Assembly (NCBI GenBank): GCA_965637545.1 | Contig: OZ281498.1 | Span: 13,268,001 to 13,332,000, forward strand | DNA length: 64,000 bases | Direction of reading: 5' to 3' | Source: Phallusia mammillata | Taxonomy: Eukaryota | Part shown: in pieces, positions 28,401 to 40,400 of the stretch | How positions within the stretch are numbered: the first letter of the stretch is position 1 | Layout of the letters: the number at the start of each line of letters is the position of its first letter | Notes under the pieces: generated by a model | What the model was told of the DNA's origin: nothing | The model's input: only the letters and a program-made list of their open reading frames with translations | Databases searched by the model: none | Program-made: the position numbers and the translations under genes

Positions 28401-31400
28401 TCCGATTGTTACATGTGGAATTCGGTAAAAACACAAAACAAGTCATAATTTTTAAACAACATGAAAGTCGTTTAAACTTTACTGACATATTTATTAAATG
28501 AATCTTTTATTCGTTCCTTACTCAAATAATTGAAGATTATACATGAAATGACTGTTGCTTATTACTAATCACAAGGCAAATGTTTGTCTCACCTCCATCA
28601 ATAATCCCCTGCGCAAGAATTGCACCAAACTTGGCCATTACATCCTCGTGTTTATCGTTGATCACTTTACGGTACAACTCTTTGAATGTCTTCAACTGAA
28701 AACGAACACAAAGTTATATGGATTAACAACTTTTTTTGCAACGTATGTCACAATAACAACTGCGGTGAAAACCAAACTGTCCGATTGACAGATGTTTGTG
28801 GTCGTTATATAGAGGGTGTCTTGTATATTAGTGCTGAAAGGGGCAAAAAGTTAGTTGAAACTTTCAAAATAGATATTTTTTTTTCGGTTCTAACAATAAC
28901 GTCAGTATGTGTAAAAATGCGAGTGCTTTGGGTGTTTTTTTTAGGAAACGAGTTAAGAGAAACTTTGATAAGTGTCATTCAAATTTGCATACAACGCAAT
29001 AAGCCTAACGTTTAGAATTATAATTGTACACATCCGAAGTGTTATTGTTAATTAGGTCAACAGTCTAGCTTCATGGAACCCAAAACTGGATCCAGCCGGC
29101 ACGAATTAAGAAATTGTCAATACGAAAATGACCTATATTTAGAAAAAGTTTATGAACTTCCTCTAAAAACGTGAGATATCATAATGGCTCAGAAGAAAAT
29201 TCAGAAACTATATACGAGACGTCAAGACTAAACGAAATTATGGAGAAATTCACCCAACCACACCACAAGTTATTTTACGGCCCCGGGATAATCGTGCTGT
29301 AGCATATCTTTCAAAAAACGACCAAATTTAACAAATCTGTCATACCCAAACACGTAAACGACATAATGAACACGGGATAAACACACGTTTCTGTTAAAAC
29401 AGGTTTTTGTGTATTGGTTCACCATACCTGTCATGTGTACTGCAACATGAAACACAGTGCACTGTTTTTTAACACAGTTTGGTCAAAAATACTCACATTT
29501 GGTAACATATACTAGTATTTATGGTCCAAAAATTTGGCTTTAAACAGTTGTTTATTGTCGCATTTACAATTTATCGATCATATTACAAACTGAAGTTAAA
29601 ACGTTTAGTGTTTGCGAACTGTTTGGAATTAACCGTTTTACAGTAACAGTTGAAATGTAATTGTGTGTGAAATGCCCATATTCTTGTCAGCGTTTTAAGA
29701 AAGGTTACGTCGGCCCAAAATATTTGCGGCAACCGACAACCCAGCTGAAAAATCCTTCACCGCTGTAGCAAGCGATTGGGTTTCAGATTTGGAATTCCAT
29801 TCAATTTGTCACAGCTACGTCTTACTCACGGGAAATGTGGAGTAGTTTGCCACATAAAATAAACCTTGGGGCGATGATAACATATCATGAGAAGCTCGAG
29901 ACAGGAGACCAGACTTTCCAGTCGTCTAAACCTATAACAGGGCGTGGGCTGATGACTAATTGACTCAAGGAACACAGTCGTGTTGGTCGCTTTCAAGACA
30001 ATGTCGCCAAGATTCGATAAGTGCCCGCTTCAATCGGTCCTAAGTAAACTTGTCGTTACGCGAGCCCAAGTCACAACAAAAGCGTGTGCTCACTTCACAC
30101 CCCCGCTCCCACGACGACTTATCTCTCCGTAGAACTGCGACAAGACTTTCGCGAAACAGTTTCGCCCGTAACTATAGGAACGCTTATGAGGGACGTCAGA
30201 AACGGAAGCTGTTGAACATTGAGTGTATGTATTCCCTACGACCGCACAAAAGACAGCGACCCTCTAGGAGGGGGTTTCATTGTTACCGATGTTCACAATA
30301 ATAATAGGCCATGTCAAGATTAAATTGCCAACGGGTTAGGTGAATTTCGACGAAAAATGGCCTTCGCCGTAACGAAGATGATCATGGAATGGCCCTCCGG
30401 TTGATTTATGTCCATTGTTAAGTACCACGTTGTCCGCAGAGTAAGTCAACAGAGAATAGTTTCTTGTTGACATCCGAGTCAATTTGACAGACAAATATAC
30501 AACTAAGTTTCAAAACGGGATGACGTCCATCGTTCAAACAACTAAGGTACAACAGTCAAACAAGCTGTCACAAACTGAGCTATTTAAACTATAGTACGTG
30601 TTTTTATCACAGCCATCACAGTGCAATATCATAGATGAAATGTGTTTGTTTCGATTCACAATATCAATAAGCATACCAAAAATGAGTTATTGTCATGGCT
30701 AAGCAAAAAAAAAACACTTTATCTGGATACAAACCTTTGGACAGGTGGAGTCAGTGTGTTGAATAAGAATCATAGCCGATGCGATTAAGGCCCCTTGGCG
30801 GACATAGTTCACTGAATCACTTGCGAGAGGTTCCAACAATCCCAGAGCGTCCTGGAAAACACGTCACGTTTGATAAAATTGCAAAATCCATTAAATTGTT
30901 GCAATTTCGGGACTAACCTTGCTTCCTGTTCCAGCGCAGGAAATTCCTAGAGCCATAGCTGCGCCATATCTCACGTGAGGGTTATAACTTTCAGATAACA
31001 GGGAAACAACGCTGGGGCACTGCTCCGGTGTCCTGCAGTACAATGGAAACGTGATTGAAGTAATAAAATAACAACAATACACTCGATGAATATTAGGTAC
31101 CTTGTTAAATAGTTACCTGGCCTTTATTTCACAGTAAGCGAGTGCATAAAAAAGTCGAGAATCGAAAAATATTCGCTTCAAATGTAATAATACAGTGTTT
31201 TACAACACTTGTACTTCAAAAACAATTTTCCACTACACTACAATTCCATGGCTTTAAATATTGTTTTCGTGCATTCCGTTTGCAAGAGCACTTCACGAGT
31301 CCACCCCGCTTTAAACCGTTCCTTTCGACACAGACACGACCTGCGACCCTGTGGCCTAATGGATAAGGCGTCAGCCTCCGGAGCTGAAGACTGTGGGTTC

Positions 31401-37400: not shown

Positions 37401-40400
37401 TTAACACGAAAAGATAGTGGTATGGGGGCGTCGTTCGAAGGCAGCGTACCTATGTCATAAAAATCTCACGTAACACGCGTCAAATCCACTGTTATGTTCT
37501 ATTTTTTCTCTGCCAGAGTGTCTTGTGATTTTTTGCCAGCGTTTGATCGTTTTGCGTCCAGTAAACCAAGGTTACTATCACAACAAAAGTCCTGGTTCTC
37601 GGACAGCTTAGTCGATGAAAGGGGCTTTTTCTCCAACTCAGCGCAATAGAGCCAAGTTATAAATATCCGTGCTAACACGCGATTTCTGGGTCCAGCATCG
37701 ACAACTTTGTTGTGACAGTGCGGTGACGTCATAACTTGAAATTAAATCCAGTATGCAAGATCCTGCGGCGGAGGCGACACGCTTGGCGACGCTAAGTCGT
37801 GTTCCGCTGTTTTATTTCGTAACAGGCACTTGGGGGTTGAACGAAAACTGAAGAAATTCGCATTGATCGCTTCACCCGGTTTTTACGACGATATTGGCAA
37901 ATTCCACTTGTCAACATTGCGGCTCAAGGACGTGGCTTTTGCTGATGCATGTTTTTCAAAACACTTCTAACCGGGCCAATGCACTCCGCGCTAAAAGCTC
38001 GCAGTGACAGCATAATACGGCGTAGAATGTGCGAGGGCAAAAATGGAGGAATTATGACCACACGCAGCATGCGCAACAGAGAAGACGAATCTGCACATTT
38101 CAAAAGTATGAAAACAATGTCAACATACGAATCGTACATTGTGCTAAGAATTTCAAATCTAGTTTCTGCAACAAACAAAAAAGAAGTTGTACTTTACAAC
38201 ACATTGATTTTACAACCAGGCGCGGCGCTTCTCCAAATAAAGGGGTGACGCCGTTCGATAAAACGTGGCATCGAACGCCTGAGTGATCCACGTTGAAAGT
38301 GGGTTAGCAAAGATCCCGAAACAGATGGAGGGGATTGACTCGGTTAGTTTTATACAGCGTTGGCCCAACCAATCACGTTAAAGCGAAGAAATTATGTGAC
38401 GTCGCGACAGTATTGAATTCCTAAACAAGTTCGTAAGACGCTGGGCCAAGTGCAGTCGATCGAAAAACAGCACTGAAACGACCACACACTCTCGGTAACC
38501 TGATTTGCGTGCCTGTTACGTCGTTTTCTATCTGCGGCGATTGAAAGCAAATTAAAAATATCGACAAAGTGCTGTCAAATAATGTCGAACTTTATTGTGC
38601 TGAAAATTGTACGAGGTTGGACCGTTTGAGACATATGTTGCTTTTCCACATACATGAGGTAAGTTACACTTGGTCGGTAATATAACAGTTGAGGTCCAGT
38701 ATTACCATACCTAATCCTGTAGGTAGACACAAACCAGTATAATTTGAACAAAGAGATAACGACAACACGTTAAATACTGTATCCATAATTGCGTAACATT
38801 GGGTATCAATTTCAAAACAACAAATTCTGCGGTTTGGACTTGGTGCAAAGTGAAATTTCTCCCACAAGTTCCATTACCTACGCGGTTGCGTGGATTGCGT
38901 TTTATTTGAACACGAACTTACTTTTGACCCCTCGTTCAGCACCCATAAAATTTACGACCCCTCGCAAAGGAACAATCCACATTTGCGTTGGCAGCGAGTT
39001 AGGTTGAGAAACAAACAGGCGTACCTACGTCACACAAGGATCGTTGTTTGTCAACCCATTAAACACAAAACACCCAAAGTTCCATCCTCAAAAGGTTCCA
39101 AGTTGGTATTAGGCACTGATAGATTTTCACATAAAACTCGATTTCACGAAAAGGGTCAAAAGACGCTCGAGCGCAATAAAAACACCTGGACAAATGTAAC
39201 TACTTTTTACAAGAATGAGTAACAAAATATACCAAAACTTCTCCAGCAAACATTTATTGCAATCCAGAAAGTATAGTTGCTTGTCGGTACTGAACAGGCA
39301 CTGGCCTAAGCAAAACAAAAATCCCCTAACAATCTGCGACAACCAGGTGGGCGCGTATTGAGGGTTGGTGGAATGACAAAGAAAACATAAAACAGTGAAA
39401 TCATAACACGGCTGTCAGAGATTGTTGCATGTCAAGTACTTTGCTTTCCTCGTATCCTGGCAAGTAAGCCGATTTAACTGACTGTTCAAATAAAGCCAGG
39501 ACAGAAGTTTTGTGCTGGAAAACTGACAAACAGCCACTAATAGACATGAGCGCTTAATGCTGTATGCCAGTTTTGTAAGGGTAAAAGTGTGAGCAAGGAA
39601 TTTGGAAATACTACTGAAAAAATGTTACCAACAGTGTCATAAAACAAGAAACGCAAAAATATTTGCCATTACCATTAAGAAAGAAATTGAAAATTAACGA
39701 TTTCTACGTCCTGATGGGACAGAAAGCAGTATTGGACTAAGCACACGTCTTCATGGTCACGTAAACCCCCAAAATCCATGTCGACATACATAAGTAGCAC
39801 TTAATAATATTGGACTTACGGTAGTGTACTTTGCAGCTGCCAATATAAGTGGAGCGTATATTTGATTTGCAATTTGTAGTACGAAATTCAAATAGCAAAT
39901 AAAAAAATTCAAATAGCAAATTAGTGAAACTGGCCGCAAAATAACTCGTCAAAGCAACGGTGATATCATATTGTTGTTCACATTATATTCATATTGTAAT
40001 CCTATTAAGATCATATTGTATACACCTATTTTGCCTAACACAATGAATATAAACTGCGAACTGGCGCAACCTTTTTTAGGTCGCTTTCTTCCTCTGCTAC
40101 TGCAAAGAAAGTTACGAACAAGGATAGGTTACACACATTAGGGTCGAAGTAATACATACTCGCGCTGTTAGATATAGTTGGGGGAACTTACTGACTTCAC
40201 ATGCCCGAACTTGGCCAACGCTACTTTGGTAGGCATATCAAAGCAAATAATAAATTTGCTTACCTGAACAAAATAAATCCGAGCGATTCGACAGCAGCTC
40301 GCCTCACATCGTTGTTCACGTCTGACACCTAGTGGGAAAATACAACTGTACTTTATTTCTTTCACTGAAGATTGAAAAAAATATGGAAGAAAACTTACAG

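Follow-up and report, generated by a model that had tools for sequence, protein, structure and literature searches.

Can the residence of one gene inside an intron of another survive both the genome duplications of vertebrates and the rearrangement of tunicate genomes? This question is raised by a 64,000-nt stretch of DNA from Phallusia mammillata (contig OZ281498.1, positions 13,268,001–13,332,000 of the forward strand; this whole stretch is called the window below, and all coordinates are window positions unless stated otherwise), in which a gene for a serotonin (5-HT) receptor of the 5-HT2 family lies on the opposite strand within a large intron of the proteasome gene PSMD1. Mammalian HTR2B also lies within PSMD1. 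We consider it probable (about 0.78) that a single ancestral nest existed before the split of tunicates and vertebrates, and before the vertebrate duplications, and that HTR2B is its positional heir.

A receptor gene inside the largest intron of PSMD1

The host gene and the parts of it that bound the nest were as follows.

25412–47929, minus strand: PSMD1 / Rpn2, approximate span of the coding exons seen, from Pfam domains and tables of open reading frames (ORFs); about 24 exons counted by eye
40264–40328, minus strand: PSMD1 exon directly upstream of the host intron, matching human PSMD1 residues 608–627 and carrying the AG of an Arg codon
31033–40263, minus strand: host intron, 9231 bp, GT..AG, phase 2, with codon and phase the same in the second species described below
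30918–31032, minus strand: PSMD1 exon directly downstream of the host intron, carrying the G of the Arg codon and TPEQCP...AGTGSK, human PSMD1 residues 629–666

The identity of the host as PSMD1 / Rpn2 followed from the ordered series of its Pfam domains together with high identity to human PSMD1. RPN2_N began at profile position 1 at 47765–47929, with further pieces at 47151–47438 and 46275–46724, and was followed on the minus strand by PC_rep (41339–41554) and RPN2_C (26488–26712); in the ORF tables the C-terminal reading frame terminated at 25412. When the animal's own genome was searched with the PC_rep profile, the matches were at the PSMD1 locus and one on contig C2, with no others; the same profile had 0 hits in the control genomes.

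The borders of the host intron were read directly from the sequence. On the minus strand the 3' end of the upstream exon reads GGA TTT ATT TTG TTC AG/gtaagc, and the downstream exon begins at 31032 as ctgcag/G ACA CCG GAG CAG TGC CCC, so that the intron splits an Arg codon in the protein context LGFILF-R-TPEQCP. Against human PSMD1 chains the upstream exon aligned to residues 608–627 with 19/20 identical (E about 1e-5) and the downstream exon to residues 629–666 with 36/38 identical (E about 9e-22); the split codon therefore corresponds to human residue 628 of 953. Judged by eye from the ORF tables, no other intron of PSMD1 exceeds about 2 kb, and the host intron is the largest. Thus, the first-pass annotation of this DNA, which had described a 9231-bp phase-2 PSMD1 intron (LGFILFR/TPEQCP) containing the whole receptor on the other strand, was confirmed exactly by reading the sequence.

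Structure and transcription of the nested gene

The receptor gene is on the plus strand and runs from an ATG at 32977 to a stop codon at 37458–37460. Its eight coding exons, all of them within the host intron, encode the transmembrane helices (TM), intracellular loops (ICL) and extracellular loops (ECL) listed here; X6, X10 and X12 are transcript-like contigs.

32977–33043, plus strand: exon 1, ATG and N-terminal tail with NWT and NST sites; joint 33043/33167 in contig X6
33167–33376, plus strand: exon 2, TM1–TM2; Pfam 7tm_1, E 1.5e-12; spliced joints
34382–34642, plus strand: exon 3, TM3 (LDV aspartate, DRY), long ICL2 and start of TM4; 7tm_1, E 4.8e-14; spliced joints
34819–35443, plus strand: exon 4, end of TM4, ECL2, TM5 and most of ICL3; match to Ciona 5-HT2-like proteins; spliced joints
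35530–35686, plus strand: exon 5, end of ICL3, ...NEQRASK; spliced joints
35787–35905, plus strand: exon 6, TM6, FWCPFF and ECL3; joints in X6 and X12
36353–36951, plus strand: exon 7, TM7 with NPCVY, helix 8 and long tail; joints in X6, X12 and X10
37075–37460, plus strand: exon 8, C-terminal tail and stop codon (37458–37460); joint 36951/37075 in X6 and X10

Contigs from four runs, which the search tool guessed to be RNA, were placed on 31950–37900. All seven modelled receptor introns matched GT..AG joints in these contigs once the stated cut offsets had been applied: X6 carried all seven joints, X12 added support for the sixth (35905/36353) and X10 for the seventh (36951/37075). As spliced contigs can only come from RNA, the receptor gene is transcribed and spliced. 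Contig X6 starts at 32927 and read depth ends near 37.6 kb; the observed receptor transcript therefore lies within the host intron.

The X6 contig differed from the window by a 12-nt in-frame insertion after 35288, in the ICL3 part of exon 4, and by G>A at 35117 and 35119, which are probably allelic variation. A (GT)n microsatellite occupies 36976–37011 in receptor intron 7 and was skipped as a repeat when reads were placed. The second intracellular loop, which is in contact with the G protein, exceeds that of solved 5-HT2 receptors by about 20 residues (34520–34590, exon 3). This extension looks like a tunicate trait, because the 2A-like protein of Ciona has a comparable insert and the corresponding exon of the second species aligns over its full length.

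Family membership of the receptor

To place the receptor, its exons were searched, and entered in a tree, one at a time, and a full-length Ciona protein of 429 aa served as proxy for the whole receptor. With the Pfam 7tm_1 profile, exons 2 and 3 exceeded the curated cut-off of 30.5 bits (48 and 52.9 bits) and exons 4 and 6 fell below it (27.5 and 20.4 bits); the receptor thus carries a rhodopsin-type seven-transmembrane domain. The translations contain MLDVFFS, SLDRYL, FWCPFF and NPCVY, which we take to be the amine-binding aspartate of TM3, the DRY motif, the CWxP-type motif of TM6 and NPxxY.

For the ORF of exon 4, a word search gave as best named relatives two Ciona intestinalis proteins, one 5-HT2C-like (450 aa) and one 5-HT2A-like (429 aa), at 68–69% identity. 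With the 429-aa protein as query, the other 118 relatives among the matches listed were vertebrate proteins named 5-HT2A, B or C, hypothetical or generic G protein-coupled receptors, or unnamed (37–47% identity), and no other receptor's name occurred among those 118. Against solved structures this protein scored 280–291 bits with 2C, 248–262 with 2A and 223–247 with 2B, and about 150 with the D2 and D3 receptors. In the animal's own 240-Mb assembly it matched at 55–72% only in this locus, the next best loci being at 37–42%.

A quick maximum-likelihood tree was made from 48 rows: 41 of 133 collected proteins, four further amine-receptor ORFs from this genome, and exons 2, 3 and 4 of the window as separate rows, a sample drawn up without named non-5-HT2 outgroups and without protostome 5-HT2. 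One clade (support 98) united the window exons with the two Ciona proteins and two unnamed ones, and the 5-HT2 group made up of this tunicate clade and the vertebrate 5-HT2 proteins was split from the four amine-receptor ORFs of the same genome at 99. The gnathostome 2B clade and a 2C clade (100 each) were separate from the tunicate clade. Solved-chain scores, the names of relatives and the tree therefore agree in placing the receptor within the 5-HT2 clade, and the best named relatives and the grouping of the window exons with Ciona bear out the tunicate affinity that had been supposed from the letters alone. Taken together, these sequence comparisons identify the receptor as a 5-HT2-family orthologue and, in this tunicate-like animal, as the only 5-HT2 pro-orthologue.

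Two of the collected proteins, P0016 and P0017, came from JGI contigs of 1383 and 2665 bp; they are full-length, intron-free, transcript-like 5-HT2 relatives that fell in the tunicate clade (98), and among the rows they were the most similar to window exons 2 and 3 (60–62%).

The first-pass annotation had also pointed to 2B-like strings, and had treated the receptor as 2B-like overall. The strings are present (NEQRASK at 35666–35686 and VLG at 35787–35795, which are contiguous only once spliced, and GYVSSGVNP at 36366–36392), and exons 6 and 7 do match human 5-HT2B best among solved chains: exon 6 gave 37.5 bits with 2B, 36 with 2C and 33 with 2A, and exon 7 gave 47 with 2B, 43 with 2A and 37 with 2C. 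However, this local preference is confined to TM6 and TM7. Exon 3 favours 2A (58 bits, against 54 for 2C, 48 for a D1B chain and 47 for 2B), the Ciona orthologue ranks whole solved proteins in the order 2C, 2A, 2B, and the gnathostome 2B clade excludes the tunicate clade. The receptor did not group with 2B apart from 2A and 2C, and we rejected its assignment as a 2B-like receptor, or 2B orthologue, as a whole.

The same nest in a second species

Scanning metagenome contigs with an alignment of the exon 4 relatives gave 13 loci. Three of these (L009, L010 and L011), each on a contig of its own, were mutually 99.8–99.9% identical and represent one related species, whose receptor exons, taken from L011, were 42–87% identical to those of the window. 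On L011 (positions in this paragraph being those of that contig) receptor exons 2–7 lie on the plus strand at 5657–11973 and PSMD1 lies on the minus strand, its ...LGFILF exon ending at 14536 and its TPEQCP exon starting at 1590. The host intron is 12945 bp long, GT..AG and phase 2, and splits the same Arg codon, here completed as AG/A. The antisense 5-HT2-in-PSMD1 nest of this species is identical to that of the window; in both, the receptor is wholly within the PSMD1 intron and on the opposite strand.

Besides the receptor, the host intron of the window holds one further gene, between the PSMD1 exon and the 5' end of the receptor.

31344–31418, plus strand: tRNA-Arg(CCG) gene, found with ARAGORN and by Rfam RF00005 (69.3 bits)

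This tRNA block recurs at the matching place in the second species, 96% identical over 81 nt (L011 2451–2531). Its distance to the PSMD1 exon is 312 bp in the window and about 860 bp in L011, and it is on the same strand as the receptor. It was the only block outside the exons to align between the two introns: at E 1e-3 or better no conserved non-coding block was found, and only the receptor exons and the tRNA aligned.

The remaining ten loci (L012–L021) carry 5-HT2-like genes that are about 33–48% identical to the Ciona protein, with scores about twice those of other amine receptors, and some of them (L019, L015) have no intron between the parts encoding TM3 and TM5. Judged from sequence, these genes would belong to more distant animals than the L011 species.

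The vertebrate nest and the position of the host intron

The first-pass annotation had taken human HTR2B to lie antisense in a large PSMD1 intron, and that intron to be at the same junction. A table in PMC3420870 places mouse Psmd1 at 87895789–87970466 and Htr2b at 87930441–87942088; the coordinates of Htr2b fall within the span of Psmd1, and Htr2b is therefore inside Psmd1. For human, PMC7579899 has a CpG annotated PSMD1;HTR2B. The literature searched contained no statement of which PSMD1 intron hosts vertebrate HTR2B.

On the host side, a 63-aa ORF that includes the TPEQCP exon was used as query against a set of exon-level ORFs; the counts refer to the 120 ORFs listed. In 72 of them the residues upstream of the TPEQCP exon were unrelated, and 64 of these 72 had R at the junction, the residue expected from read-through of AG/G or AG/A; in seven of the 72 (QTPRIVSLL type) homology starts a few residues later. 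Another 33 continued unbroken from ...LGF[IL]L[FL], that is, without an intron, and 15 were too short to judge. The 38-residue exon of the human PSMD1 chain recurs unchanged in five of the 72, and the named rainbow-trout protein P0214 also breaks homology at the codon equivalent to Arg628. The five human-exon ORFs, the trout protein and the breaks in 72/120 thus show that the human-type exon comes with an intron at the Arg628 codon, in the same phase, and that this intron is old and common among the ORFs of the set. For a shared host intron this is a necessary condition only.

Origin of the nest

The account that we favour is that of an inherited gene within a gene, in which the animal's only 5-HT2-type receptor gene lies, in antisense orientation, within a single intron of PSMD1, a gene that is essential and present in one copy. 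The receptor would be its own transcription unit, starting and ending inside the intron, and the PSMD1 pre-mRNA would splice the whole receptor gene out. If, as we infer, the tunicate nest is homologous to vertebrate HTR2B-in-PSMD1, then the layout was present in the last common ancestor of tunicates and vertebrates. It would be older than the vertebrate genome duplications that yielded 2A, 2B and 2C, and HTR2B would be the paralogue that kept the ancestral position. That the nest has persisted even though tunicate genomes rearrange readily would most likely have a structural reason: any single breakpoint in the intron would break an essential host gene, and removing the inner gene would need two breakpoints within one intron. 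The first-pass annotation was largely right in outline; its key point, the same junction in vertebrates, stands as a prediction, and its treatment of the receptor as 2B-like overall did not stand.

Several points weigh against this account. How the tunicate, 2B, 2C and cyclostome groups branch relative to one another is left open by the tree, whose sample lacked true 2A because the proteins picked under the name '2A-like' fell inside the 2C clade. That mammalian HTR2B and PSMD1 are on opposite strands enters the argument as general background. Splicing of PSMD1 over the 9231-bp intron is predicted from its GT..AG ends, its phase and homology, and the structural mechanism of retention is arrived at by reasoning from the layout. 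Finally, the ten more distant contigs (L012–L021, 1.1–7.9 kb) gave no PSMD1 match in their short flanks with three peptide queries, one of them mis-framed, a result that says nothing either way.

It could be argued that the resemblance was not inherited: tunicates and vertebrates would each have gained a 5-HT2 gene in a PSMD1 intron separately, or the gene would have moved to a different intron in one lineage. In favour of this, tunicate genomes are in general heavily rearranged, the intron that hosts HTR2B in vertebrates may be another one, and the large intron at the Arg628 codon offers a big target in this species. Nevertheless, thousands of genes could have served as host, and for two orthologous genes to become nested by chance (and antisense, from general knowledge of the mammalian pair) is very unlikely; moreover, the nest has been stable between two tunicates with receptor exons as divergent as those of the window and L011, and the intron position is also found with the human-type exon. 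Convergence is thus, in our judgement, unlikely. An error of assembly or annotation, by which receptor and PSMD1 had been wrongly joined or the receptor were a pseudogene, is scarcely credible. We found nothing in its favour, and DNA-type runs are among those that carry the stretch (in full or in part in 16 of the 24 runs listed, from seven studies, with a single coded organism label on all 24), an independent metagenome assembly of another species shows the same gene order, and the receptor exons are all open and are spliced in transcript contigs.

The nest might instead have been kept by function, with selection acting on regulatory elements that the two genes share or interleave, or on antisense interference in transcription between the receptor and the highly expressed PSMD1. 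Its persistence in two tunicates and in mammals would fit such a constraint, as would the fact that receptor and tRNA both keep their place and strand between species. However, because no conserved non-coding block was found between the introns of the window and L011, this is a weaker rival, and we regard it as improbable. More ambitious is the proposal that the phase-2 intron around the nest is one and the same in vertebrates and tunicates, and that the nest predates the chordates at more than 550 million years and is kept in place beyond inertia by functional coupling between transcription of the proteasome gene and of the antisense receptor, with the tRNA-Arg gene as a further long-term lodger; this we consider doubtful.

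Genomic surroundings

Inspection by eye showed a YEATS-domain-like gene upstream of PSMD1 (about 58000–62400, minus strand) and an FGF-like exon pair downstream of it (about 16400–17100, minus strand). To our knowledge neither is a neighbour of PSMD1 in human, and it seems that only the nest itself has been retained and not the wider PSMD1 neighbourhood.

Significance and comparison with known systems

By its position, the nest anchors the history of the 5-HT2 receptors. If it was inherited, HTR2B has stayed at the original location, and HTR2A and HTR2C would be the copies that lost their PSMD1 hosts once the genome had been duplicated. The nest would then also be a small relic of gene order that survived the scrambling of tunicate genomes, and it lends itself to a clean test of what keeps nested genes in place, a structural trap or shared regulation.

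Two Ciona intestinalis proteins are the closest named counterparts of the receptor. P0003 (2A-like) and P0002 (2C-like) share its long ICL2 and are 68–69% identical to it in the TM4–TM5 region and 55–72% per exon, but these models, at 429–450 aa, are without the long C-terminal tail of the window receptor. In P0002 ('2C-like isoform X2') NEQRASK and VLG are separated by 21 additional residues, as though an intron corresponding to window intron 5 had been retained; this points to a shared intron position.

No paper was found that describes the 5-HT2-in-PSMD1 arrangement beyond gene lists, and the supplementary tables of microsynteny or nested-gene catalogues may list the pair. The mammalian nest (mouse chromosome 1, human 2q37) consists of the same orthologous pair with the receptor inside the span of the proteasome gene. 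Compared with it, the tunicate gene would be a single, pre-duplication 5-HT2 with seven coding introns and a product of about 800 residues, in a host intron of 9–13 kb. Nested gene pairs are considered difficult to pull apart, and the tunicate nest resembles other conserved nested genes, and ancient microsynteny in general, as two genes that would have stayed together for hundreds of millions of years. It is thus a fresh example of conserved nested genes, of modest interest, and no new kind of system.

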